Below, in pieces: positions 24,101-55,880 of a stretch of DNA of 64,000 nt (position 1 is the stretch's first letter; each line of letters opens with the position of its first letter). Position numbers and translations under genes: made by a program. The DNA comes from Paragordius varius (Eukaryota; Animalia; Nematomorpha). The stretch is from positions 9,548,001 through 9,612,000 of the forward strand of contig OZ176053.1 of assembly GCA_964247055.1 (NCBI GenBank), written 5' to 3'. The notes under the pieces were generated by a model. The model had not been told where the DNA came from. It worked only from the letters and a program-made list of their open reading frames with translations, and did not search any database.

Positions 24101-27100
24101 ATGCATTTTGACTTCTTAAAATATCTACTCAAATATTTTTATGTTAACCATGCTTTTTATTGCTCAATAATTATTCCAATTTTATTTCTACCTATACCGA
24201 TATTATATCCTGATCCAGTATATTTTTATATTCTTAATATAGGCAATTAAATGCGCCTACGGTTCTCTGGTTACAGCATTATTTCTAATTACACAAGCAT
24301 TACCTATACCTATCGCATCTCTTATACCAATATTTATTTTTCCATGTTTAGGCATTATGAATTTAAAGGATGTTTCCGCTAATTATATGAAAGTAACTAA
24401 ATATTAATATCAAGGATCCAATCACCTTATTTCTTGCCTCTCTTATCATTGCACAGGCTATTGAAAATGTAGATTTACATAGGCGAATATCGTTAAATTT
24501 GTTACTTCTTTTTGGGTCTACTTCAATATGGTTTTTATATATTTACATAATTTATTAATACTTTTATATGTTTTATTAATATATATTGATTTTCTTGAAC
24601 AACCTTACTCATTTCTTTTAAAATTGTTATGTTTTATAAATAGAAACAAGAGGATGATGCGAGATAAAAATTCAATATTTTTCTATAACTCATAAAATCA
24701 TGTCGCAATTTTAAATAATATTAATTATTTTTATTTTTGACATACAACTAAAAATACTTTTTCTTGCATAAAAATCAAAATTATTTTTCATTGTCAATAT
24801 AATTATATTTAGCACTTAATTATTTATTTTTTTGTAAAATCACTACTAAAAATAATAATTTTAAAAAATTATTACATTTTATAAAAAGAAACGTTTCGAA
24901 TTTAATAAAAATAACGCAAACTCAAGAAAAAATAGTTTATGAATCGGTCCATAGAGCATCATAGAAAAATATATGTCTTTAAATTACACCCATTGGTTCT
25001 TAAAGTCAGTAACACAACAAATCAATAATATAATTTTATGAGTCAAAAATGAATTAATTTAACTGCACATTTTATAAATAAATCACCATATTACATGTTT
25101 TAAATAACAATATTTAATAATTATATTATAAAATTTTTAATCATTTTTACCCAACATCTGAATTGACAATTATTATAAACAAAGTTAATTTGCCACACAT
25201 TTGGATAGGTTAATGTTAGGAATTCTATCGACCACCTTTTTTATCTCCATGTGGATTAATAACACGGCAGTGGCTGCTCTTATAACACCCATAGTGGCAG
25301 GAATTATGAAAGAGTTTCAAAGATTAAAACATGCCCACACTAACGGAGATTTTGGCACGAATTTGGGTGGTTTTTTTTATCTATTAAAATGTTTGAGTGT
25401 TAAATGGATTGTACTGTTGTATTAAGGAATTATTTTATGATTAATAATTTTGGAGTTATACGTCTATAATGTATTTAAGCCATAGGATATGTTTAAGTTT
25501 ATTCTGGGAGGTCGATTTAAGAACAAAGTTTTTTGACCGCTAACTTTCATTTCTTCACTTAAGTTTTTATAATTTATTGTAGTATAAATTTTGAAACATT
25601 TTCCTATTTAAAAGCTAATATAACTAATCGTTTTCAGATATAGTGTTGATACATTTTTTTATATGTGTCATAAAGAAAATGGGAAGGATCTGAGGTACAG
25701 TAACACGGAAACTAATTTGCAATATTTACTTTCTCCTACGAAAAATATGCCAGCAAAGCGCCTTTCGGTCTATTAATTTTTATCACATTACCTGAATACA
25801 TAAAAAACAGATTATAATAAAATATTTTATTCTTACAAATATTTATGTAACATATCAATAAACCGTCATGTAATAAACATATTTTACAGGCGAATCAATT
25901 TAAATTATCCCTTATAGATTGGTGAAAATATCATAGGCGTTGATTACATGCCAAATTTAATAGATAACGCAGGTCTTAATGCTGAAGAATTTTCTAATAT
26001 ATCAAATAATAAAGGTATTTTACAATTTTATTTATAATGAAGATTAATTAAATTTTATTATTTAGTTTACTTTAATTTTGTTTATTTAGCAACAAACTTA
26101 CAGAAAAACCGGTAATATATATGTATACTTAAATACTTTTTAATAGTTGTGTTAACTATCTGATGTCAAAAAATTGACAATAAAAAACTACATTATTATT
26201 TTAAATGGTAAAATTAAAAGATTTTATAATATAAGGTTTTGGAAAAGAGCAATATACTAAAAGATTTTTTTTAGATTTTTTCTTATTTTATAGCATTAAA
26301 TTAGGAAAACAATTATTAAATACTTTGTGCCAAAACTTGGCATTTGGTAAGTCCATTTTATTTCTATGTGACCATCTTTATTTTAATAATGTTTACGTAT
26401 CAATCATGGTGGACAGTAATTTAAACATAATATATAATAATAAAAGCAATACTTTTCTAAATTAATTTTAAGTTTTTGCAATTTGCTCAGTTTTTTAACA
26501 TTAAATTTATATTTTAGATCAAATATACCTCATAGCCTTTCATCACTCCATAAAGCTTTATTCATAAGCGTGGCCTATGGGGCTAATTTGGGGGGAACTG
26601 GCTCTCTTACAGGGACAGGTCCTAACCTTATAATGACTGGGATAATGACACAGTTAAATTCAACTATGATACAACAAATTTTATACTTTACAAAAATTTT
26701 AAGACTGATTTTTTATGAATACAGTTTAATCAATAACTTTTATATTTTTAGAAAGAAACAAATATTTGTCTATATATATATATATATATTATATTGAGCT
26801 TTTAGAATTTTTTTTATTAAATTTGTTATAAATAGACTTTTTGGTCCCTCAGCCGAAATTAGTTTTGCAAAATGGTTGATATATTCCTGCCCAGGAGCCA
26901 TAATAATTCTCATACTAACGTGGATAGCATTGGCTTTTATCTTTTTGGGATTTGGGTAGTTTTCAATTTTTTGATCTAATGATTGATAATTTAGCCAAAT
27001 CTCTAGATATTATTGCAACATTATTTTATTAGTTTAAGTAATTAATGAATGTGTAATTTTAATACTAAAATTAAATTAAATATATATATAGAGAATCATT

Positions 27101-30100
27101 CAATCAAATACGAGGAAGATCATCTCGCCGAATGGCAGATCCAAAACCATTTATTCGACAACAACTCAATTTGATGGGGAATGTAAAGTAAAATATGTTT
27201 TATACTATCTATTAAGACATTTCTTTTAAGGATAGTCATTTTGATCATTTCCTAAAAAATAATCACACTTTGGCGGTTCATTTGTGGTAATGCACTTTAA
27301 TATCATACGGACGCGGATATTTTGGCTTGCATTTAAACGCAATAACAAATGAATGTAAACACTTTGGAATCTTGTGACAGGGTGCTCTTAATTAAATGAT
27401 AATACCCATATTCTTTATTGTGTCAAAATGCGAATTTGATATTCTAAATCCTATTCACCGTTCCCTTTTCAAGGTTTGAGCATATATTTTGATTTGTTAG
27501 TTAATATTATCATTATAGTTCTAACATCTAGCGCTATAATTCTAAATACTTATATGAACGATCTTTCAAATACATTATTAGGCTGAACCAAGGTTTTTAT
27601 CATAAACCATTTAATAAAAAAATTCTTGCGAGTATGAAACATTTAATAACTGGCCTCTGTTGTTAGTTAGATGATCAGCATAAATCACGGGGTGGCAGTA
27701 CAATTTTGGGGGCCAATCATACATTTTATTTATATATTTAATGTTCGACAATTTTTTTCCAAACCTCTGTTACGATCATTACTTCTAAATCTCTTTTCAA
27801 AAAATCTTTACATATATTGCAGCACTAGTGGAACCCTATAATCCCCCCCCCACAAAGGGTTTTGTTAAAAAAAGCACCTATGCCCTTTTCCTATTTGTAT
27901 TAAGGCCCACTTATTAGGTTAAATCGTTTGAAATTGAGAACACCTTCCAACGAGGGTATAATGAAACCCTACTAATGAGCCAAATAATTTTAATCATTTA
28001 TTATCAATTTTTCACATATCTATAGAATATTTCTTAAATTATACAATAAAATATTATTGAGTTGGTAACGACGAGGATGTTTATGTAAATAATGTTTTAA
28101 TCGTCGTAAAATAATGTAAAAATAAAATATAATTTATTAATTATCAAATTTTTCGCCATAGGCATCATCAGGAGATTAATTAAGAAAAATATATATAATA
28201 ACATAATAAAAATTAAATTAAAAAATAAAAAATGAACAAAATCATGGTTGATATTACTTATATAGGAAAAATCACAAAAGAATCGTTAGTGGACAAAAGA
28301 AAGGAAGATCACAAAAAAACCGTTGTGATAATAACCAAATGTTTATTTTAATGCTATAAATAAAATAATAATTTAGCATAAAACAATGTGGGCACAAAAT
28401 TATTAAAATTTAAGTAATATCTACACTGTAAAATGGTTTGTGATTAAAAATTCGATAATTTTTGATAAACGATTTAGTTTCAGGGTTTATATATTTGCTC
28501 TCTTCATAGCGATTAAGTAAACCATCTTCTGCGCTCTGTATAAAGAGTGCTTCTTTTGTTATCATTGAGCTGTATTTTCTTTCTACGGCTAAAACGTCAA
28601 TTGTGTTTGAGCACTCATGGTTGTTATACACGCAATGCATAAACATGGCCGAACTTTTGCTTTTTTGATGGTCCTTATATCTTACCTTTGTATTTCGCTT
28701 CGACTGGCCTATGTAAATTGCTGCGCAATTCTTGCATTTCAACTTATATATCGTTTTTCCATTTCCACTTCAACAGAGTTTAACATTTTTACAACGTTCG
28801 ATGTTGGTTTATAAATCACTTTTATGTCAGCTTTCTTTTTTAAAATTCTCCCGAGACTTTCTGATGAGCGCTATAGAGGCAAGCAAATTTTATACGATTG
28901 TTTTTTCCGGAGGGATGAATAGTTTCGTCCGTGAGGTTTCTGTGAGAAGGATGGGCTGGCACGGAATAAAACCAACATGATTTGCCGACATGGGAGTCAG
29001 GTTTCCTTTTAGAATTTTGTTTACTGCTGTTGTAATCCATTCTTTTTGATAGCCTTGTTGTACACCCCTCCTTCACATCATACAAGGCTATAGTATCCAA
29101 TTACCTAAAACACACTTCTCTTACCCAATACAGTAAAAATGCAGATCCAAACAAATAAAATTGTACAGTATTTGCTACAACAAGGCTATCAAAAAGAATG
29201 GATAACAAAAGCGTAAACAAAATTCTAAAAAGAAACCTAGCTCCCATGTCGGCAAATCCGGATGGTTGTGTTCCATGCCAACCCATCCTTCCCACAGAAA
29301 CCTCACGGTCAACAGACGAAACTCATCCCTCCGAAAATAACAATCGTGTGAAATTTGCTTGCCTCTATAGCGCTACATCAGAAAGTCTCGGGAGAATTTT
29401 AAAAAAGAAAGATGACATAAAAGTGATTTATAAATCAACATCGAACGTTGTAAAAATGATAAACTCTAAGGAGGTGGAAATGGAAAAACGATATATAAGT
29501 TGAAAGCAAGCATTGCCCAGCAATTTACCTAGGCCAGTCGAAGCGAAACATAAATTTAAGATATAAGGACCATCAAAAAAGCAAAAGTTCGGCCATGTTT
29601 ATGCATTGCGTGGATAACAACCATGAGTGCTCAAACACAATTGACGTTTTAGCCGTAGAAAGAAAGTACAGCTCAAGAATAACAAAAGAAGCACTCTTGA
29701 GCGCAGAAGATGGTTTACTTAATCGCCGTAAATCGTTTTTCAAAAATTATCGAATTTTTAAGCACAAACCATTTTACAGTGTAGACATTACTTAAATTTA
29801 AATAATATTGTGTTAACATTGTTTAATGTTAAATCGTCATTTTATTTATAGCATTACAATTAATTTTTTTATAGCACATTTGGTTATTTTATATCACAAC
29901 GGTTTCTTTGTGATATTTCTTTCATTTGTCCATTAACGGTTCCTTTGTAATTTTTTCCTATATAAGTAATATCAACCATGGTTATGTTCATTTTTTTTAT
30001 TTTTTTGAATAATTTTTTTTATCTTATATTATATATATATGTTTTTCTTAACTAATCTCCTGATGAGGCATATGGCGAAAATTTGAGAATAAAATATTAT

Positions 30101-33100
30101 ATTAATTATATTTTAATCAAAAATCTATTTACCCACAATCATGGTAATTACGGGTAGACTGTAAATACTTTCCAAAAATATGATAAATTTGGTACTTTGT
30201 TTCAGTTGGCTTTTGATGAAGTTTGCCAGAATTTTTTTTATATTGTTACAGCGTTTCCAAGCTCGTAATTTTTTCAACTGTTTTATTATAATTATTAACT
30301 TTCTAACTGGCTTTCCATCGCTATTCTCAAATAAAAGCTAAATAAAATAAGGCGTAGGAAGATTTTGGTTTGTTCTTATTATAAAAATTTAATTTACTAA
30401 TATCTCTTTTCCCAACAAGCATGGGGTTTAAAATTTTAAAATAAGGTTATTAAAAAAGGATTATGTCATAAGTTCGAAACATCTAACGTCCCATATGCAT
30501 TTTTTATGGAAATAAATATTATAATCCTACAATATGGCGAAAAACCACATATTTATTTAAATTTATAATACCATATTTTGGGTTCATAAACAGTTTAAAC
30601 GAATTTACCTGTTTGGTCGGTTTTAAATGCATTCTTTTATGGTCGCCTGTGTCAATAATGCTGTGGTAAAACTTAATATAATATGCAATAAAATATGTTT
30701 AAATATCAAATGTAATGTTCAAATAATTTACCGGATAGCAACATGTCATTACGGTAATAATTTCCATAACCAGGTCAGACTTATCAAATATGGCCAAATT
30801 GTAAATAAAAAAGTTATATGTATTTGTAGTATGAATTGAATCGAAATTTTATTATACAGGCAGGAAGAAACGACAGTCATGATTACATTTGTCTTGCTTG
30901 TGATTGTATGGATTTTAAAAGACCCCAAATTTATGCCAGGCTGGCAATCTTGGTTCCCACCAAAGTATATATTTAAATTAATTGTTAAGATTTTTAAATG
31001 TCATTATGCATTATTAAAACAAATCTATCTTTAGAAGCCACAATTTTTAACATTTCATTTTCTATTTGTATTATCTAGCACGGTTAATGATACGACACCA
31101 GCCATATTACTATCACTTTTGTACTTTATTATACCCCGAGATTTTAGTTGTCTCAACCCATTTCTCCACAGTAAATAATTGGATTAAATTTTCTATACTC
31201 TGTATCGTTTACATATATTTTTTCTGATAAAAGTGTCCAAAATGCACAAACTAACAACATCAAAAGACGTCAGTGATCCAGAAACAACCGAGAGCTTAAA
31301 AATTGTGTTTAGGCCTATTCTCACATGGAATGATGTACAAAACAAGCTTATGTGGGATGTTATCCTTTTGTTTGGGGGTGGGATGGCGATTTCCGCTTGT
31401 TTTAGAGTATTTTATTGTTTTGTATATATTATATCAAAATTGATATTGTTTTTAATCTCGGTTATTTTAGTTAAACCTAACAAAAGTTGTAATATCCAAA
31501 GAAAAATCGGAATTATAGCTCTAAAATTTTTTATGAATGTTTTTTATGGACATCAAAAACCTATTATTTTTATCAAGACCCTGGTTATGAAAAAAACTGT
31601 TGTATGTGACAAAAAGCATGCAAAAATATTTGCGAATATTAACCCACAATAATAAAATACAATACTTTTCCTCACAAAATTTCAATAAGTTTTCATAGTT
31701 ATATGCTACCATAGATATTTATAACTTATTTTTTGCTAAAATTTGTTTTATGGCATTAAATTACACAAAAAATATATTTAGACATCCGGATTGTCAAAAT
31801 TGTTGGTTAAATGGTTTGCCGTCTTTTCCAACACCAGCCCACTCCTAATATGTATCTTGTTTACAACAATAACCTCTTTTCTTACTGAACTTATGAGTAA
31901 CATTTCTACTGCTTCCATACTTGTACCACTTATGGCAGAATTAGTAAAAAAAATTTTACATATAAATAATTCGATTCCATTTGTTATATATATGATAATT
32001 GTCCAAAACTTTTGTAACTAAATCTTTTTTCAATATCCATTTTAATCAATATTTTTTACGTGAATTTTAATTAGATAAAATGGTTTTAATTTCGTTGCAA
32101 TAAAATTTAATGCTACTTTATTTTTAAAAATCAAAAATTTACTTTAGTAATTTAAATAAATAGCATTTAGTTTAAATTATTAACCTCAAAAACGAAAAAA
32201 TATAAAAGAATTAGGATGCGCTTCTAATTAAATCATGATATTTTGTTTTTTTAGTTATGGAATGCTTCCGATATTATTGTTCCGCAACCCGTTATTAATT
32301 CCATATTTTATAACACCTGATTTTTTAATTAATAAAGTATATATATATATAGGCAGTTAGTTTGAAAATTAACCCTCATTACCTTGTGTTTCCAGTTACT
32401 CTGGCGGCATCATATTCATTCATGTTACCAATTGCCACGGGACCTAACGCCATAGTTTACAGTGCTGGTGATCTTTCATTTTGGGATATGGTAATTAAAT
32501 TTAATAATTAAAAAACTAACCCAATTATTTGTTTCCTAAATTCTTTTATCCGTTTTATTATGTGTTTTTAACATAAATCCTAAAAATATCCAGGTAATTA
32601 GTTTAATTTTTATGATTAATTCCTAGGCTTTTTGTAATTTCAAATTAATGTTTAAAATGTATATAATCGCTTTAAAAACTAACAAAAATATTTTTAGCTT
32701 TTATAGTTCAATATAATTTTTGAAATATATGTTGAGTGGAATTGGAGCTATATATATTTTGACCGTAAAAAAATTAAAGCTTTTTCGCATTAAATAACAT
32801 AATGTCAAATAGAACGTTTGGGCAGAGAACATGTATAGCATAGTATCTTCATTTAAATTTTGAATCAATAGAAATTGACACAAAAATGTACTCATCTCTT
32901 ATATTAATTTTGCGAAAAGATTTATGTTGGAAAATCCGATAAATATTGGAAAAATCTATCAAGGTCAAATACAACTTAATCTAAATTCGAGCACTCTAAT
33001 ATTATATAAGCATTAATCACTAATTTTGGAGGTTTTAAGCATCAAAGGATCCTAAAAAACGTTCATTTACTAATTTAACTAAGGCAAGTTTAATTTCAAC

Positions 33101-34312
33101 CATTTATAATAATAAAAACAAAGAAACTAAAAGAGGGACGTATCATACTTTCAGAATGTTGTTTTAAAAAAATAGTTAATTAAACATAGCTCAATATGAT
33201 TCAAAAAGTTGTATTTTGTTGGAAAAAAGTTGAATATGATTGAAAAATTGTGTTTGCATAATATAAAAAAATAACTTTTCCAAATCAGAAAAAATATGGG
33301 ATAAGATAAATGAATTCCAAACAAACGATTCAGTTCATAATTAGGCTACAACTAATAAACTGATATCGGATTGGCTGAAAAACAATCGTGGATACAAAAC
33401 CAAAATATTCCAAGAAACTATTTTATATTATTTTTTGGATATTTATACAATATTTAATTTTTAGACAAACTTTTCTGTATTTAACTAATCATCAAATTTA
33501 TAATAAAGCCATTCAGGTCTCAAAGTAAAAAAAAAATTATAAACAAGATTGGCCCTTTAGTTCACAATTTAATTTAAATTTACTATTTTCCAACTATTAA
33601 CACTCCATTTATCTTTTCACTTTTTTGGCCTTGTTTTCATTTTGGGTAGTTTTATATCGCAGAGCTCAATTTCGTAAATAAACTACAATTTTAAAAGTTA
33701 TTTTAGTTAATTATTGAACATTGAATAATGTATTAGAAAAAAAGCTTATATTTTTACAGTTGTGTGACTTTTAGGGCCTAATTATGGGCAGCTCCAAAAC
33801 ACGATGAAATTAACAGCTATTATTAAAAAATATATAAAATTTTTGCTGATAAGTGAAGCTTTTTATATTCAACCATAATATATACTGATTTGCCTGTTGC
33901 ATTAATAAAAAATTTATAGAAAAATATGGCTGCAAAAAATTTGAGATGAGGATTTTTTTAAAATTTTACAGTTTTTACAAGAAATATTTGTATTATATGC
34001 TAAAAGACTATAAAGAAAGCATATTTTTAAATTCGGTTCAATGGCTAAATACTTTTTAAGTAAATTTTCAAATTTCTCTGGGATATAAAACTACCCCAAA
34101 AGGTAATGGGGTGTTGAATATCGAATGCAGTCCTCCTAAATTTAAAAAAAACTTTAAAAATACATAAAATGAACTTTTTATGTGTGAAAAACCAAAAATG
34201 TGCGGGTTCAATAATATGTATGTGTTACACATTTTTTGGTTTTTGTACTCTACTTCTATTTTTTATTTTCTTCTTTTTTGGATGTTTTTTACATATATGG
34301 AGATAACGTTTA

Positions 34313-34362
<50 letters not shown>

Positions 34363-35285
34363 AAACCAAAATAGAGTTCAATAAACTCTTTGTTAAAAAG
34401 AAAGTAATTTGAAATAAAGCTATAATTGTATGTTGAAAGCATTTGCCATTGCGATTATGTTTAGATGTTGGTAGGAATGTACTCTACCTACCCTTGTTTT
34501 TTATTTTCTATCACATGTGTTTCCAAAATAATATATTACCTTGTACTTTATTTTTACCTATAGCTACTTACATTTTCCCGTTCAAATATATACATTTAAA
34601 GTTCATTGCACAGTTTTTTGTACGATTCTGCATGTGTTTATTTCTATAATAATAACATTTACACTCTGTTTTCAGGAGTTTAATGCTCTCTTGACATATT
34701 ATATGGCCATATTTCAAAAAATGCAAAGTTCCCTAAAGTATTGAATGCTCTTTTTTGGATAAATGGCCGATTTCTATCCAACTATACCAACATGATAGTG
34801 TTTAAACTATTTTCTAATAATTTTATACAAGAATAACTTTTATTACATACACCAAATTATATATCCAAATTTGTATTTACAACAAATTATTCAATCTTAT
34901 CAGCTTACTTAAATGCATATTAACGTTCATACGTTGAACTTTTAAGGGTCAATGATACGCGTTTTTGTATGTAATAATAGAGCAAAAAAATATTTTTTGG
35001 TTTACATATATTTGGAAGCAAAAAGGTTATTTATTAGTGTACGTGAGTTCAAAGACCATGAACCTTACATTCAGTATATTGTATAGGCCAAATTTTTTAT
35101 GAATTTATTCATATATCGATTTTTTTTCGTTCTATTAGTTATTACCAGGGTTCATCGTCAATTTCATTGGTGTCATAGTTTGCGTCGTTTCCATCAATAC
35201 ATATGCTAAATGGACCCTGGGTACTGGTACATTTCCAAATTGGGCCTCAAATTTTAAAGTTAATTCGACTTCTATGATTCAGTAG
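24101..35285 (+). CDS. SLC13: SLC13-family (Indy/NaDC/NaCT-like) Na+:dicarboxylate/citrate/sulfate cotransporter. Exons 24101-24217, 24243-24392, 24415-24530, 25209-~25398, 25918-26014, 26090-26111, 26518-26652, 26836-26955, 27092-27187, 30860-30964, 31079-31170, 31234-31406, 31782-31943, 32353-32490, 35139-35285
   Basis: Spliced translation has the family signatures AIENVDLHRRISL, FFISMWINNTA, AYGANLGGTGSLTGTGPNL, WDVILLFGGGMAI, FLTELMSNISTA, SYSFMLPIATGPNAIVY and the C-terminal FPNWA. Introns are GT-AG. The junction after exon 4 (variable loop) is approximate. Confidence 0.95.
28125..29062 (-). mobile_element. Penelope-like element 3' half (GIY-YIG plus 3' UTR), left arm of a palindrome in an SLC13 intron
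   Basis: ORF 28410-28742 reads CKNCAAIYIGQSKRNTKVRYKDH...KEALFIQ...LLNR (GIY-YIG). The arm is the reverse complement of 29176-~30110. Confidence 0.9.
28142..28175 (-). ncRNA. Minimal type I hammerhead ribozyme motif
   Basis: The minus strand reads TCTC-CTGATGA-T-GCC TAT GGC-GAAA-AATTT-GATA. Core and stem II are intact; there is one extra A and a stem I mismatch. Confidence 0.75.
29063..30110 (+). mobile_element. 5'-truncated Penelope-like element (end of RT thumb, GIY-YIG, 3' UTR), forming the spacer and right arm of the palindrome
   Basis: Frameshifted HPSFTSYKAIV...KIVQYLLQQGYQKEWI (PLE thumb-like), then FACLYSATSESLGRILKK...IKVIYK and the GIY-YIG tail (29595-29795). Confidence 0.9.
30056..30088 (+). 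ncRNA. Minimal type I hammerhead ribozyme motif
   Basis: TCTC-CTGATGA-G-GCA TAT GGC-GAA-AATT-T-GAGA. Stem I is TCTC/GAGA, the core is intact, stem III is a palindromic AATT, and stem II has one mismatch. Confidence 0.78.
33640..34100. mobile_element. Second copy of the GGGTAGTT(T)TATATCCCAGA TIR family
   Basis: TTTTGGGTAGTTTTATATCGCAGAG ... CTCTGGGATATAAAACTACCCCAAAA. Confidence 0.55.
34319..34358. repeat. (TA)n microsatellite
   Basis: Seen directly. Confidence 0.98.
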
Positions 35286-39119: not shown

Positions 39120-41167
39120 AATATTTAAAGCTGCATTATGTCATTTGAAATGCAAAATAGGTTATGGTGCGGAAAACGATGTTAGTATAGACATATTTCC
39201 TATTTTAATATTGAGTGTATAGTCTTCTTTTCAGAAAATCTTTTATTGATTAGTTTAGGATATCTAGAAATTATTAATTTAATTATCTCGGGTGTCTAGA
39301 ATAAAGATTTGAATATGAAACCCTGCGATAAATATCGTTTATAATTTCTATTAACTAAGATGTACATTGAAAAACCTCGATTAAATTGAAATTTTTTAAT
39401 GGAAACTATTGGCAAAGGTTAACTTATATAAAATCAGTAAAAACCATTTTGCGCTTTGGCCTTAATATTATGAAAATTTCTTTTAAAAGTTTAATTAGTC
39501 AACTTTGTTGGTGTTTGACTGTTACATACGGCTTAGCTGTATTTGCTCCATCGAATATCTTATGCTTTATAAAAAAAATTTTTGCATTATTTAACCGTCG
39601 AAGCTTAAATGTTTGGGCCGTCATAAACATTAAAGTAAAGCAAGTGATAAACAAAATTTTTTTTGAATCAGGATTACAGTGTGATTGATGCATATATATT
39701 TTATAAAATTAATGTGACCATATAATTCCGAATAATTAGCATTATACTAACGTATTTATAGATACACAAATTTATGCCTGTGCAATTCGTAATAGTTTTA
39801 TTTTAGCCATAGACAAATAAGAGTTTTTCGTTCATTTATTAATTAGTTTCGTATTACTGTATATATATAGTGTGAGTTTTAGAACCAACAGTTCCTGTAA
39901 TTTTTCAGTTGGCTGTTTCTAGACACCTTCTCAAATGAAATGTGATTTGTACTTTTTGTCTAGAAAATTTACTTTTTTATACCAGAGCGTAGTAATAATT
40001 ATTTATTTTACAACCATGCGGTGACAAACAGCAGTATTTTAATTTTATACCATGTAAAAATTGTCCAAAATAAAAGAGAATTTTTTCTGGTTTCTAGCAA
40101 TTTTTTTTCCTAATTACGTAAGGAAGCTAAAAATATCACAGAGGTATATGTATAATAAAAAGTACTTTATTACCAAACATATGTCAGTATATTTCAAACC
40201 AAATCAATAATTCAAAAAGATTTCGCAACATTTGTTTTATCTAAAATACTGGAAGTCATTTAATTTTTTGAACACCAAAATGGCAAGATGAGATTAAAAT
40301 ATTTTAATGAAAATTATCATATATTATGATGTTTGAAAAATGATTTGACCTGCAGACAAAAATGACAAAATATAAAACATAAACAGTATTTTAAATTTTA
40401 CGATAAACAATTTAAATTTAAAAAATTTAATTTTTATTCTTTTGCAAATTATTGTACTTTTTTACACGAAAAATTTTATGTTACAGAGGCGCCTAGAAAT
40501 AAGTACGACATAACAAACGGTTTTATGGTAGGAAAGTGTATGATAATAGTTGAATTTTTTTATATTTCTTAGACAGTTGTTTTTATTATTCTAATTTATA
40601 GACTTCATAATCTTAAAATTATGCTAAGTACCCTAAAACGATGTTTTGTGTTTTCGAAGTAATGTAAATTTAGGCAAGAAAGGGGTATAAATAGATTTTG
40701 TCCTTGATTTAAATGTCGCTGCTACACAAAAAAAGTCATTTTGTTTGACAATAATAGTAAAAGTTTTAGGTATTGCTAAATAAATGGTGAATTAGCAAAA
40801 TAAATGATATATAAAATATCTTCAAACCAATCTGAAGATAACGGTAACGCTATATAGTAGAATTTTGAAAACAAAAGTAAATTTTTTTAAACATAAACAT
40901 GTAAATATATGTCTCCTCTTTCACTATCTCTCTATTTCTGTGTGCTTGCTGCCTATGAATAAGCAAAAAATATGAATAATTACTAGGTAGTAAAATGTAC
41001 ACACCTATTTTTTTATTATTAACATATTATTAGAATTCACTTTTTAAAATATTTTTTCAATATTATGTGTGTGCGTTTGAATCCAATGTTTGAATAGTCC
41101 ATATTATCTTATTTCCATATCCTTCAAAATAAAATATTTCCTGATAAAATATATTTCTGACACATAT

Positions 41168-43525
41168 ATGATTGATTTTCGCTGTCTTAGATTAGCGAAT
41201 CAGGCTGCGCATGTCAAAAAATTGAATCAAAAACATCAAGTACACGTTTCTGTGCCCGCATGTAAAAGTTACAAAAATTGTCGGAAATTGTTAAAAGATA
41301 ATTTGGCATTCGCACAATTGTCAAACATCGATCGACATACCTTTGGTGGTTGGATTAAATCAAATGCGTTTCACCAAGATATCACAGTTCAATTAAATAA
41401 CAATCATTTAGAAGAACCAGGTATTAATGTGGTTCCAAAGGCAGATGGGCCAACACCACCCGAATCATTAATTGAAACAAAGGACAAATCAATTGTTATT
41501 TGCCCGTTCAAAAAACCATCTATTAACGTTTTAAATAAAACATTTGAAGATATTCCAGGCCCTAACATACGAGGACTAGGAGATTCATCTTTTTTCAGAT
41601 ACAAACCTTTTGGTAATTATTTTATACTCTTCTTGCTATTCGGTCCATTTCAACCGTTTTTATGTATTTAAAGTGAAGAGTGTGCAGGTTTAAATATAAA
41701 ATGGTCTCTGATAATTTGTCGCGGAGCCCGGATCGTATAAGTTGATATGTGTCATGCATACAGTGGACCCTCTATACAGCAACTTAATTAGCTCAAGCGC
41801 ACTTCGAATTTTAAATAAGGCCTTATAAGTTATCGTTTAGAGATTTACTTATTTGTGATTTTTATAAAACCATAGTAATAAGCCAAAAATAATTAAATAA
41901 TATATATTTTTTCATTTTTCAATATTATATTATTTTATGAAATTTTTTAAAGAAGGGATATAGATGTTAACTATGTATTTTTTCCTACAATCGGGTCATT
42001 ATGGGGAAGTGGGGGTCCACTGTATAAATAAAACATTTGATTAAGTTAGTTTAAATACTAAAATTTTACATTACGGTTCTTGCATATAATTTACTATATA
42101 ATTTTGTCCAAGATTGTTTATAATTTTAAAAATTTTGCAACAATTACATCGGTACATATGTGTGTTATTTCTGTTTATAAACGTAACTAAAACTAGGTCA
42201 ATGCACCTATTAAAAAAACAGTATTATCTTCAATTACCTATTTTTGCATTGTAATTATTTTGTTACATACCTTTCAAGGACATTTCTTCATTTAAAAAAG
42301 TAGCGTGAATTTAATTAGGTTTGATTTAGGATGCAAACAAGGAATTGTTTTATCATAAAATATAAAGTGATAACCTTTATACATTAACACAAAATTCAGC
42401 TGAAACAAAACAAAACAAAAAATGGTATAATATGGACGTTTTTTCAAACAAAATTACATTAAATTATTTTTCATAACTCTAACATAAAGAATAGTGAACT
42501 AAAGGTGGATGGTGAAAAATTGAATCACATTAAATTTATTGATCGAATATAAAATTTATTTATTTGTTTTAAGTAAATTTACTTAATTATTTTTTTAAAG
42601 CAAAGTACAGTATAATAGGATAAAGAATATACTGGTTTCGGAACTCAAAGGGGAGTTCTCTTCTCGGTAAAAACTTTAAAAATTTCTAATAATGAAATGT
42701 ATGTGTATGTTTTTCTCATGTACCACCTGTTTAAAGCACGCTGTTCATTGGTGTTTGAAATTTACTCATCCTCTTGATTAAAAGTATAGGTTTAAACTTT
42801 AGATTCATATCCTTGTGATTGTTAATGACATGCAATCTATATCCTGAATGACCATAATTAAAGCGTGTTCAGAAATAGAACTATTTTCTATGTTAGGGTT
42901 TTTCAGACAATCTTGGTGTTCTTTTCATCATATAATAATTTTCCTTTATGTTAGAACAATATATCATTTCTTACATTCACAATAAACCTTAAAAAATTAA
43001 CGTATTTACCGTTTCCATGCCACAAAATAATATGAAGTACGTTCCAACAAAATTTTGTTAAAAATTAATTTTTTGTAAAAGGTATGCATTTTTAAAAAAT
43101 ATTTTTAGTTGATATCCAAAAATTAGTATATGTTTAAAATTTTTATCACTCGACATTTTCGCGTTTATTAAGAAAACTAGCCCATTTTAGAAGACCGTAA
43201 AAATTTGAGACTTTGGGAGTCCACATCTAAAAATTAAAACTTAAAAAAAAATTATTTTGCCTTTCATCTGTAGTTTAGTAAATATATCAATGTTAGTGTT
43301 TAAAGCAGAGGTGTCCATCACGCTGCCCTCCAAAGCTTTTTGTACTGCCCATGTAAAATTTGAGAATTCATAATTTGCAAAAATATCACAAAATCTTAGC
43401 AAAATTGATATTCCTTAAAAAATTTCAAATAAGTCTCTCCCATTGGCAAGAACTGAAAAAATTGCAATATTGCGTTGGCATATTGCAGTTTTTTGTTTGA
43501 AATCTAATAAATTATTTATGAATGC

Positions 43526-43575
<50 letters not shown>

Positions 43576-46500
43576 GTATATATCGAATGCGGCCCCCGGA
43601 GCCATTTGTATGGAACACACCTGGTATGAAGAGTGAGACTTTATTATAACCATTGAAATAAAAGTTAATGATGTTTTTATAAATACAGTATGCATATTAA
43701 TGATGGTCGATTCACATTATTGTTGGGCAATTGGTAATACAGTAGTGTATGATAAACAAATTCTGTCCATAATTAAATATATTTAAGATGTGAAGAATTG
43801 CAAGTCCAACCATTTGTACAACGCTACTATATTACCAATTGTCCGAAAATACTGTGAATTGACCAAAATTAACGTGCATACTGTAAATTGTTCATGTTTT
43901 TACATTTATATAAAAAATATATAAACTGTCATTCAGCAATATTTTTAAATCTATTAATTTGCCTTTTTGCCCATCGAAAACTAGCGCTCCCAAGCTTAAA
44001 TATGGCGGCATGTGATTCTCATAACCACAAAAACTATGTAAAATTCAGTAAAAAAAAATTACATATATTGGTGAAGCACTATCTCATCATTGCTATTTAA
44101 TAGCTATGTTATAGTAATTAACAATGATGCTTTTGTATATCTTAGGTCTTTTAAGACTATTGCAATTATAATAATATGAATCTTCAATAAAAAAGGGTGG
44201 AACGTGAATAAAAAATGTAATATAAGTAATAAAGGAATTGGGACAAAAATTGATCTTCAACCACTAAACTAACATGACATATATGGATTGATCTTTAAAA
44301 TTTTCAATTAATTAGTAGTATTATTGAAAAATATATTCTTTCCAAATTATGAAACCCCAAATTTTTGGCAAGCCTCACAAAAACTCTCGGAGGGGTCGCG
44401 TGTAAGCAACCCCTGTTTTGAAAAATGTCATAGTTAACAATGTCTTTTCTATGATGACCTTTTAAGGTTTTGTAAATGCTGTCAAGAATAAATTTATCAA
44501 AATATTGCTAAAGGTTGATTTCGACTGCAAAACAATCCATCTAATAAAGATCTATATAAAAATCATATATTTAATTTAATACAAATATTAATTAGGTAGA
44601 TGGGATTACAACAAACTACATCATGCAAATTTAGAGAAATTTCAAAAGTACGGTCCGATTGTGCGCGAAAAACAAAGCATATACGGTATCAATAGTCTTT
44701 TATTATTCGATCCCAGGGATGTCGAAAAGGTATTCCGTAAGGAAGGCGCATGTCCATACAGGCCCTCTTTCCCAGCATTAGTTAATCATCGAATCAAGCA
44801 TAATTACAGTTTGGGTCTTGGACAATTGTATGTCTTAAATATACTGACATTTACATTTCATTGATAATTTTGTTTTAAAATAGAGAAAGTAATTACTTAG
44901 TATAAAATTTTATACATCATGGTTACTTTCAATTTAACAGTCTCCTATATATGACGACAGTTAAAAACACCATTTTATCATGCGTAAATATTAGGTGTCA
45001 CATATATGGTCAAGCTATATTCCAGAAAAATATAGTTTCTTAAAATTTGAGATATTTGGTTTGCGCATTATGTGCCAAAAGAATTAAAAGAGAAACCATA
45101 AATGTAAATTATTAATTTTAAAATCAGGTAAATACCAAATTTTTGTTTTGGTAAATATACAGCTTAGAATTTATGGCCTTAAAACAAATATTTTAAAAAA
45201 ATATACAATATTTGGTTTACATGATTTATTTCGAAATTTCATTACTTTTTTCAATAGTGTATATACATTTTTCTACAAGCTAGACAAGGGACGGAATGGC
45301 GAGAATTGCGAAGAACTGTACAAAAGCGCATGATGAATTTAGAATCGGCTTTGCCTTATCTCAATATCCAATCAAATACTGCAGATGATCTAGTCAAACT
45401 CATACGTCATAAACGATCAAGGATTACTATGCACATAGATGATTTTATAACTGATTTGCAAAAATGGTCATTAGAATGTAATTTCATTATTCTATAAAAT
45501 TATTTCGTAATATTTTTTGTTATTGGTTTTCATAACATTCTAGCTATAGTAGCTGCGTTATTGGGCAGCCGGTTGGGATGTTTAAATACTAACAATGCAG
45601 GAAATATGGAAATCGAACAATTGATTGATGATACTTGTCGAATTTTCGAAGCCCAATACGATTTGATGAATGGGATCCCATGGTGGAAGTATTTCCCAAC
45701 CAAATCTTATCATCAATTTGTGCAAAGTCATGAGAGAATTTTCAAGTATGCCATACTTTCTTTATCTTTTAAATTAATGTTTAACACAATTTTTCTGTAT
45801 TTAAAATTTAGAATTTGTAAAAAATACACAATGGAAGTTTTGGATAGACCCCAAAATAATACAAATTGTAGTCACAATATAAATTCTATTCATGAAGTCA
45901 ATTCAAATAATAGCAAATCTAGTTCAATCAATTTTATAAGCTACCTTGCTAAGGAAAAATCGTTAAAAATAAATGATCTTCTTACCACCGTGATTGAGCT
46001 AATGATATCAGGAATACAAACGGTATGTTTCTGTGAATATAAATAGCTGCCATATATGTATATGACCTATCAATACAAATCATTAATTTTACTAGATTAA
46101 TATTACAAAAATGTATAACAGTAATCGTATCGCTTAATATTTAACTTAGGTTTTACACTAATGCTTTAATAGACATTTTTTCAATTTTATTCCTCTTTTA
46201 CTCCGGACGTCATGCAATCTATTTTTTTTACCTTGGTATCTTATTTCTATACCATTTATACCAGTTGCCATAATTAACTTTAAACTGCACCTTGTAGATT
46301 TATTTCCAATTTTAATTTTCCTCTTATTCCACTCACTTATTCCAATATTAATTATTTTCGCTTATTACGCAATAATCACCAGATGCTTCCTTATTTTATT
46401 TTCCATCTTCGAATCTATGATGTAAAAACCTATATTTACTATGAATTTTTTTCCTATTTAGGTGAAGTAGCAATACACCTTCAGCAATAATATAAAGCAA

Positions 46501-53737: not shown

Positions 53738-54464
53738 TCATAATAATAAAGCTAATAAATACGGAGCAAGTTGATCGGAAAACGTTTTGATCGTCTCCAT
53801 CAATATTTTCTAGGATATTAATCAATAACAAAACTTGTCCTGGAGGAGCGATCATACTAAACTCTATGAGATAATTATTGGATATGGGTTCCAGATTTTC
53901 AAAATTATTTGGTCTTATCATCTTTATTAGCATATATATTATTGAATACTTTATATATTTTTGATATTACAATTTTTAATTTTCCTTTATTGAACAGATA
54001 ACCTTTGCATATGTATTCATATTCTTGTCTTTTCTATATATAAATAATTAATAACCTAAAACCCAAATCGAAATAAAATGAAAGAGCGTTGGGACTAGCA
54101 GGAACATCTATGGATGTTCGATAATATACGATAGAATTTTTATCAGCAAATTCAATAGGACCTTGATAACGAATATAATGAGGAGCATTTGTAAATGACA
54201 AAGATCTACGAATTTTAATCTTAAAAGTATTTGAGAGCCCAGAACCGTGAGTTTCGTTTTCAATGAAGCATTAAATAAAAACATACTAGAAATTAAAATT
54301 AATCCCGTTTCATAGTCTACAAACTCATTTACCGCAGAAGTTTTTCCATCACAAATACCCATGAGTTTTTGTATGACCATATCTAAATCCTTTTCCAAAA
54401 TGAGTCCCTGTGTAAAATATTCTTGCGGCTGTGCAAGATTTGGATCAAAAATATCTGTCAGCAT
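53738..54464 (-). CDS. MED18: Mediator subunit 18. Exons 54464-54287, 54260-54056, 54028-53950, 53921-53835, 53809-~53738 (last codons uncertain)
   Basis: Spliced translation: QEYFTQGLILEKDLDMVIQKLMGICD...FVDYE...KIRRS...HYIRYQG...DKN...RTSIDV...DLGFRQEYEYICKGYLFNKGKLKIVISKIYK...EPISNNYLIEFSMIAPPGQ...KTFSDQLAP. This is colinear with MED18 as I remember it (EYLLQG...LRGLCD; GFR..EF..KG..F.KG; YLVELSVVAP.GQ; FAEQLKP). The model needs four 25-28 nt introns. Confidence 0.88.
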
Positions 54465-54501
54465 GGTTATTGGTGCATTCAATTTAACTGGTGTTTTACA
54501 T

Positions 54502-55880
54502 ATGGATAGCAAGGAAATTTTTTTGAAAGGAGCATCGTCGAGAGACCCTCTGAACTTGGAAAATTCTTTACCAAAACACAAAAATTATAATAAAGATCCC
54601 TTAATAATACCATCAATCGTTAATGTTAAGAATCCTTTGAATTTAATTTTAAATTATGAGGTTAAAAATAATACGAAACCCCCACCTCGTAAAAAAAGAA
54701 AATCAGATTTTTTATACACAAATAATTTTTTTTATGGAAGAAAAACTGAAAAAACCAAAACTGTATTTACATACGGGAATTACCCTGGCTATTATAATTA
54801 TCGGAATCCAAATACAGCCAATTATGGACCTGATGAAATGATTGATCCTCGGCTCTATGTAATACACAAGGATTGGATTATGAATAAAAAAATATTAGAT
54901 GTTGGATGTAATGACGGCTCAATCACCATCTTTATTGCCAAAAAATTTAAACCATCTTTGATTGTTGGCCTAGACATAGACAATAAATTAATAAAAAAGG
55001 CTAAATATGAAATATTACGGCAACTTGAATTGGATAAATCTCACATCAAACATCCAGTTCGCAAAAATTTATCCAAAGCTCATCTATATCCCTTGTTTAA
55101 TACCGTGACCCAAGATAAATTTCCTTACAATGTTGAATTTGATACGGTAATTCTCATTGAAATTTATGTTAGCTTTGGTAAATATTTTTTAGTAAATGAT
55201 TTTTTTATCAATAGATTAATTATGTGCCAGAGTGTCCCGAGTTATTGGCCTTACAGCATAGTGAATATGATGTAATCTTCCTCCTCTCAGTTTCAAAATG
55301 GGTTCATTTTAATTGGGGCGATACCGGTTTAAAACTTACATTCCAGCGAATCTACAAACAATTGAATCCCAAGGGATTATTTGTGTTTGAGCCACAAGAA
55401 TGGGGAAGCTATCTTAAAGGGAAGAAAAAGGTTATGATCCATGAAAAATAATGAAAAAAATATATTTAGTATATAAATAGTTTCATTTATTACCCATATA
55501 TTTTATAGAATTCGATTAATTATTTACTTATTTTTAGATTTTAATATTATATTTGTAGACTGGTCACCTTCTATCCCACATCAAATTTAAACCAGAACAA
55601 TTCAAATCATACCTTTTACACGAGGTTGGATTCAATTATGTTAAAGCTTTTCTCCCATCCAAGCCTCATGGAAGTATTATTGACAATTATACTCTTTTTA
55701 TATTAGATAGTCTTTTAATCATTGTTAAACTTTATATTTACCATTTAACTTTTAGCTGGGTTTTCTCGCACAATTTATGTTTATGTCAAATGTGATAAAT
55801 CAGAAGTCGAAAAGTATGTCTGTGAAAACAAACTTGAGGGTGGAGAATATGCAATATCCAAACCGACCGAAATAAGATAA
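54502..55880 (+). CDS. MEPCE: 7SK snRNA methylphosphate capping enzyme (bin3/BCDIN3 family), ~366 aa. Exons 54502-55146, 55215-55430, 55559-55673, 55756-55880
   Basis: Motifs [13 protein letters not shown] (N-terminal DPLNL), [65 protein letters not shown] and GFSRTIYVY. Phase-consistent GT-AG introns. The start could be further upstream (54361). Confidence 0.93.

Follow-up and report, generated by a model that had tools for sequence, protein, structure and literature searches.

Can a segment of little more than twenty nucleotides (nt) be a working intron in an animal gene? An intron of 22-25 nt is smaller than what was long held to be the minimum for animals, and the question is raised twice over, within 200 nt, by the 5' end of a transporter gene of the SLC13 family in the horsehair worm Paragordius varius. 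The gene lies in a window of 64,000 nt (the whole stretch of DNA analysed here, positions 9,548,001 to 9,612,000 of the forward strand of contig OZ176053.1, assembly GCA_964247055.1), where an earlier note, made from the letters alone, had read two short segments as its first two introns. Introns shorter than about 30 base pairs (bp) had been considered absent from animals (PMC13644364, Mol Biol Evol, September 2026), and in the literature searched the only animals credited there with introns below 30 nt are myxobolid myxozoans (medians 22-27 bp) and Dicyema japonicum. The evidence assembled here makes it very probable that both segments are real spliceosomal introns of the U2 type, that the SLC13 (INDY/NaDC-like) gene around them is intact, and that they arose by miniaturisation of ancestral introns of ordinary length. 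The part of the gene at issue was modelled by following conserved blocks and splice sites, with frames carried exon by exon by script, and reads as follows:

24101-24217, plus strand: SLC13 exon 1, 39 codons, with its ATG at 24101 directly after an in-frame TGA
24218-24242, plus strand: micro-intron 1, 25 nt, GT-AG, phase 0, 12% G+C, starting GTATAT and ending ATATAG
24243-24392, plus strand: SLC13 exon 2, 50 codons, the same codon count as in all three paralogues described below
24393-24414, plus strand: micro-intron 2, 22 nt, GT-AG, phase 0, 18% G+C, starting GTAACT and ending ATCAAG
24415-24530, plus strand: SLC13 exon 3, ending in phase 2 inside a tryptophan codon
24531-25208, plus strand: intron 3, 678 nt, with position and phase as in the paralogues

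Checked base by base, the two segments match the earlier description of them as GT-AG introns of 25 and 22 nt in phase 0, and an internal AG is absent from both. The three exons that flank them are all open. Retention of either had been said to give an early stop, and a reading frame carried through micro-intron 1 does end after 10 codons, one carried through micro-intron 2 after only 4. It is worth noting that the splice motif contributes nothing by itself: in this window, which has about 27% G+C throughout, a generic AT-rich GT...AG 26-mer occurs 25 times against 25.6 expected from shuffles, so that the motif alone is not above chance. The above-chance signal is instead the placement of both segments, because they sit at intron boundaries shared with the paralogues and because their removal yields gapless collinearity with SLC13 proteins. 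A minor, U12-type identity was considered and rejected: such introns require a 5' site of the form (A/G)TATCCTT together with a U12 branch motif, and the 5' ends here read GTATAT and GTAACT.

Collinearity is most direct across the second segment. Residues 3-50 of exon 2 align to residues 50-97 of human SLC13A2 (PDB match 8w6c, expectation value (E) 2.5e-7), and residues 4-34 of exon 3 align to residues 101-131 of the same chain; residue 50 of exon 2 therefore abuts residue 1 of exon 3 with no gap. The junction is equally gapless on SLC13A5, SLC13A1 and NaDC3, making four human SLC13 structures in all, and the claim that excision of the segments joins a protein collinear with SLC13 transporters is borne out for exons 2 and 3. 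Family identity was likewise upheld exon by exon by matches in Pfam and PDB. The Pfam matches were scored one exon at a time, a scale on which a single exon (32353-32490) reaches the cut-off alone, and they run collinearly along two related profiles: on PF00939 (Na_sulph_symp) exon 2 occupies positions 33-72 and exon 3 positions 86-124, with further matches at 211-243, 306-336 and 401-442, whilst the related CitMHS profile covers the exons between. A word search with exon 4 returned no candidate.

The same alignments bear on where translation begins. If it began downstream, or at another first exon, exons 1 and 2 would be non-coding and the short segments irrelevant, an outcome that the earlier note had itself singled out as fatal to its claim; exon 1 taken alone is in fact without a Pfam or PDB match. 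It nevertheless resembles exon 1 of two of the paralogues (A1 and A2, below), and its ATG stands right after a stop, whilst exon 2 has the SLC13A2 match just given and a length of 50 codons that recurs in every SLC13 copy of the genome. Together these make a non-coding exon 1 and exon 2 very unlikely.

The paralogues provide the evidence for what the two segments once were. A search of the genome that contains the window (110.5 megabases in 44 contigs) with the SLC13 family profile recovered three further SLC13 genes: A1 and A2, in tandem near 5.64-5.67 Mb of contig 1, and B, on the minus strand near 9.07-9.08 Mb of the same contig. In all four genes exon 2 is exactly 50 codons long, and the introns at its two ends compare as follows:

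First boundary intron: 25 nt in the window gene, 535 nt in A1, 785 nt in A2; in B exon 1 was not found
Second boundary intron: 22 nt in the window gene, 268 nt in A1, 5,086 nt in A2, 1,079 nt in B

Wherever the paralogues are readable, the introns at both boundaries are GT-AG, in phase 0 and at codon boundaries identical to those of the window gene, and intron 3 of the window gene (678 nt, phase 2, in a tryptophan codon) also stands at a position shared with the paralogues. Identity between the window gene and the other three is 44-49% across exons 2 and 3 (A1 and A2 share 94% with each other); intron positions shared at this degree of divergence are therefore older than an old duplication. 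The most economical reading would be a shrinkage of two ordinary introns in the copy that lies in the window. Since the same ancestral intron is 22 nt in one copy and 5 kilobases (kb) in another, shrinkage would have affected introns individually, not as part of a genome-wide compaction. This contrast between paralogues at a single ancestral position (22 nt in one, 5 kb in another) is new here.

The SLC13/DASS family, in which the gene falls, is characterised by a fold made of a scaffold and a transport domain, by dimers, and by two Ser-Asn-Thr-type motifs at the tips of hairpins. The exon translations of the window gene give Asn-Asn-Thr for the first of these motifs, where the family has Ser-Asn-Thr, and Ser-Asn-Ile for the second. 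Its likeness to human NaDC1, NaDC3, NaCT and NaS1 and Drosophila INDY lies in the collinearity, exon by exon, with solved structures and with PF00939 and in its length, 575 codons as compared with the 568-608 residues of the solved chains. As an observation in its own right, the first hairpin motif takes a different form in each SLC13 copy, four in all (Asn-Asn-Thr, Asn-Asn-Ser, Ser-Asn-Ser and Asn-Asp-Ala), a variation that may reflect different ion coupling.

Are such introns peculiar to this gene? The earlier note had taken it as independent support for a class of micro-introns, and the class was found again on checking eEF1A, BiP, alpha-tubulin and a mitochondrial EF-G-like gene. In eEF1A (contig 1, minus strand) the first three exons are near-identical to mammalian eEF1A1 (5lzs) and leave no gap in it, covering its residues 1-48, 49-108 and 109-164, and the GT-AG introns between them measure 24 nt (9914772-9914795) and 22 nt (9914570-9914591); the later introns are of 58 nt, about 61 nt and about 66 nt. 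BiP (contig 4) has an intron of 23 nt (12482291-12482313) inside the invariant Gly-Thr-Thr-Tyr-Ser-Cys motif and one of 28 nt (12482546-12482573) further on; a homologue aligns contiguously across both, and the third BiP intron has 69 nt. In alpha-tubulin (contig 3) a 29-nt intron follows right after the ATG and precedes introns of 81 and 180 nt, whilst the mitochondrial EF-G-like gene has an intron of 26 nt and a CCT gene one of 36 nt. The cases number nine, in six genes on five contigs. A word search with the 346-residue BiP exon found that BiP is 80-84% identical to diverse animal BiPs; it found no protein or transcript of the same species that would span a micro-intron, the best identity being 84%.

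One eEF1A intron is unusual in another respect. The third, of 58 nt, separates codons 164 and 165 (contig 1, 9914340-9914400, minus strand); it starts with GCATTT, finishes with TATAG and has no GT donor available, which gives it the look of a GC-AG intron whose 5' site is weak.

Recurrence on this scale also bears on the quality of the DNA record itself. Were the two SLC13 segments spurious short insertions left by sequencing or assembly, they would not be expected, as random insertions, to start with GT and end with AG twice over and to fall twice on paralogous intron boundaries, nor would similar cases turn up in several genes on several contigs. Two DNA runs contain 0.86-0.93 of the words sampled from the stretch, but both come from one sample, which may be the source of the assembly. 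An artefact of this kind is extremely unlikely.

The class is a minority one, confined in four genes to the first one or two introns and lying no more than about 350 coding bases from the start. Proximity to the 5' end is not sufficient for tiny size, since long introns occupy that place in the SLC13 paralogues and in several CCT genes. Nor does the genome have a median intron below 30 nt: other introns of the window's SLC13 gene span 63-3,672 nt, those of CCT genes about 430-710 nt (estimates from gaps in a match table) and those of actin about 60-280 nt. The claim that the micro-introns do not reflect global genome compaction accordingly stands, with introns of up to 3,672 nt in the very gene that carries two of the smallest and of several hundred nt in CCT genes. 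Most introns in this genome run from tens to thousands of bases, transposons lie within introns, and housekeeping proteins are not fast-evolving.

How might so short an intron be recognised? The spliceosomal components that would do so look ordinary, in that the U1 small nuclear RNA (snRNA) gene carries ACTTACCTG and U2 carries the GTAGTA branch-binding box, both canonical. The nine micro-introns have 8-19% G+C, begin with GTA (4) or GTT (5), and in 8 of the 9 have T at position -3, the exception being SLC13 intron 2. All but one also hold TAA(A/T) at a distance of 5-11 nt from the 3' end, counted from its second A, and in six of them that distance is exactly 8 nt; in SLC13 the element is TAAT, with its second A at -6 in intron 1 and at -8 in intron 2. 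Shuffling of the interiors reaches the count of 8 of 9 in 128 of 20,000 trials. Of 15 long introns taken from the four SLC13 genes only 3 have an element that near the AG, against 8 of 9 micro-introns (Fisher p = 0.002), and in the other long SLC13 introns that bear TAA(A/T) it stands 13-25 nt from the AG. A compressed spacing between a branch-like element and the AG is thus a putative hallmark of the micro-introns, new here and recognised post hoc.

The snRNA genes themselves occur in multiple copies. U1 genes, intact and decayed, form a cluster on contig 6 (565000-634000), and intact and decayed U2 copies are spread over about 270 kb of contig 3 (257000-527000) and near several contig ends.

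The canonical U1 and U2 also speak to the idea that the segments are handled without a spliceosome, by ribosomal bypassing or some other route of RNA processing. Positive evidence for such a route is lacking, its sole argument being that 22 nt falls short of the spacing usually presumed between 5' site and branch point; the GT-AG ends, the homology of the segments to ordinary introns and the spliceosomal introns of the same size published in two other animal lineages (PMC13644364) all point the other way, and a non-spliceosomal route is barely conceivable. With miniaturised U2-type introns as the preferred reading, a plausible course of events can be outlined. Introns of ordinary length would already have been present before the four SLC13 copies diverged, and in the window copy both would have shrunk to about the smallest size that the local spliceosome accepts. 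Both would still be removed from the precursor messenger RNA, probably through recognition of a short GTA/GTT 5' site and a branch-like TAA(A/T) about 8 nt before the AG, there being no room for a pyrimidine tract. Generalised post hoc from nine selected introns, a minimal U2-type intron might consist of a short 5' site, a spacer of some 8-12 nt, the branch element, a short T run and AG, and only the first intron or two of a gene would belong to the class. Whether this amounts to two splicing regimes within the same transcripts of this animal is more doubtful. Under such a scheme introns in the first 350 or so coding bases could shrink to 22-29 nt, with the branch-like TAA(A/T) about 8 nt before the AG, whilst downstream introns would keep at least 58 nt and a branch element 13-25 nt from the AG; we regard the idea as possible, and the balance as lying somewhat against it.

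The remainder of the SLC13 gene can be followed to its end. The full model has 14 exons over 24101-35285 on the plus strand, with 575 codons and one terminal stop, and 13 GT-AG introns of 25, 22, 678, 309, 823, 183, 136, 3,672, 114, 63, 375, 409 and 2,648 nt. An intron of 3.7 kb, as the earlier note had it, is present (3,672 nt). Its mention of introns of about 60-75 nt holds for one, of 63 nt; apart from the micro-introns the rest measure 114-3,672 nt. Beyond intron 3 the features are:

25209-25366, plus strand: SLC13 exon 4, with the first hairpin motif; matches the CitMHS profile at 79-113, E 7.7e-6
25676-25694, plus strand: tentative 19-nt exon, placed by restoration of the frame and lying inside a local peak of G+C
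26518-26652, plus strand: SLC13 exon, placed by a conserved block and splice sites
26836-26955, plus strand: SLC13 exon, placed by a conserved block and splice sites
27092-27187, plus strand: SLC13 exon, placed by a conserved block and splice sites
27188-30859, plus strand: the 3,672-nt intron, holding mirrored open reading frame (ORF) copies of a mobile element
30860-30964, plus strand: SLC13 exon, placed by a conserved block and splice sites
31079-31170, plus strand: SLC13 exon, placed by a conserved block and splice sites
31234-31406, plus strand: SLC13 exon, preceded by the 63-nt intron, the only one of about 60 nt
31782-31943, plus strand: SLC13 exon, with the second hairpin motif, Ser-Asn-Ile
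32353-32490, plus strand: SLC13 exon, 27.2 bits in Pfam against a cut-off of 27
35139-35285, plus strand: terminal SLC13 exon, with the stop codon at 35283-35285; E 8e-8 to the C-termini of the paralogues

In the window gene, as in A1 and A2, exon 4 closes in phase 1 but the conserved exon after it opens in phase 2. A similarity search of the interval between them (25367-26517) found no exon, and the same interval holds a candidate loop exon of 76 nt in A1 and of 73 nt in A2, whilst B splices directly. Within the 3,672-nt intron the two mirrored ORFs lie head to head (minus strand, 28410-28742; plus strand, 29595-29795) and have nearly the same protein sequence.

Several observations weigh against taking the segments as functional miniaturised introns. 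As the paralogues show, this gene family can do without short first introns. SLC13 intron 2 ends in AAG, whereas 8 of the 9 micro-introns end in TAG. One SLC13 junction depends on the tentative 19-nt exon, the sole solution found that restores the frame. To the lack of database matches for exon 1 alone may be added that, among the sequencing runs listed, none is both recorded as RNA and contains the stretch. One must also consider that the motif statistics are post hoc and were computed on nine introns of our own choosing.

Some of these points would equally suit a gene that is dead or dying, in which deletions shrank the introns below a spliceable size and left relics that now break the frame. 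The three other SLC13 copies could cover its function, no RNA was found for the locus among the listed runs, and both the atypical AAG end and the tentative exon could be taken as signs of decay. Against this, the other conserved exons are open, with conserved phases, GT-AG sites and a proper stop codon, and the exact GT and AG ends have been kept in both segments. Introns of the same size, moreover, are present in eEF1A, BiP and alpha-tubulin, and these three genes cannot all be dead. Decay of the SLC13 copy is in our judgement unlikely, and the segments are better read as miniaturised introns of a living gene.

For comparison, the closest likeness is to the myxobolids Henneguya salminicola, Thelohanellus kitauei and Myxobolus rasmusseni, whose GT-AG introns, 22-27 nt long, occupy conserved positions and are flanked by conserved exons (PMC13644364). 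Splice motifs in these animals are reduced ('GTa' and 'AG'), with A residues of weak conservation upstream of the AG and canonical U2 (PMC13644364); the 5' motif near GTa, the few A residues before the AG as a putative branch point and the canonical U2 are all shared with the introns described here. The architecture is different. In myxobolids the median intron has 22-27 nt and the genome is compact and fast-evolving, whereas here tiny size is limited to the first one or two introns, in genes whose other introns range from 58 nt to 3.7 kb, and eEF1A is near-identical to its mammalian counterpart over the first three exons. Splicing in myxobolids is, furthermore, backed by Iso-Seq (PMC13644364), whereas here it is deduced from genomic sequence. 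By the summary in that paper (PMC13644364), Dicyema japonicum is likewise an animal lineage with introns below 30 nt and reduced splice-site motifs, a property that is genome-wide there and here marks a minority class near the 5' ends of genes, beside long introns that bear transposons. Ciliates (Paramecium, Stentor; cited in PMC13644364) share spliceosomal introns of 15-30 nt with a branch-like A near the 3' end, whose retention leads to a premature stop; they are, however, unicellular and have introns almost entirely of that size, in contrast to an animal with mixed intron lengths.

Elsewhere in the window, two regions can be described from readings of their translations. A 304-codon ORF at 54108-55275 has a methyltransferase-like motif resembling Bin3/MEPCE; it starts beside a MED18 gene on the opposite strand and overlaps a 157-codon ORF on the minus strand. 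The other region, at 41090-46046, holds two long open stretches that resemble exons of a cytochrome P450-type gene.

Gene finders that impose a minimum intron size will truncate or split genes with such micro-introns at their 5' ends, distorting annotation, BUSCO scores and estimates of gene loss. The published genome of the hairworm Gordionus has 26.9% G+C, in agreement with the DNA studied here, and a BUSCO completeness of 71.6%, the hairworm genomes published measure 200-300 Mb as against 110.5 Mb for the present one, and the published accounts of hairworm genomes that were searched make no mention of introns; if the present reading is true, part of the gene loss and low BUSCO reported for the phylum could stem from gene finders missing introns of this size. 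The compressed distance between branch-like element and AG offers a concrete and testable feature for how a minimal intron is recognised. If true, the horsehair worm would be a third animal lineage with introns below 30 nt, and one of different architecture from the others.

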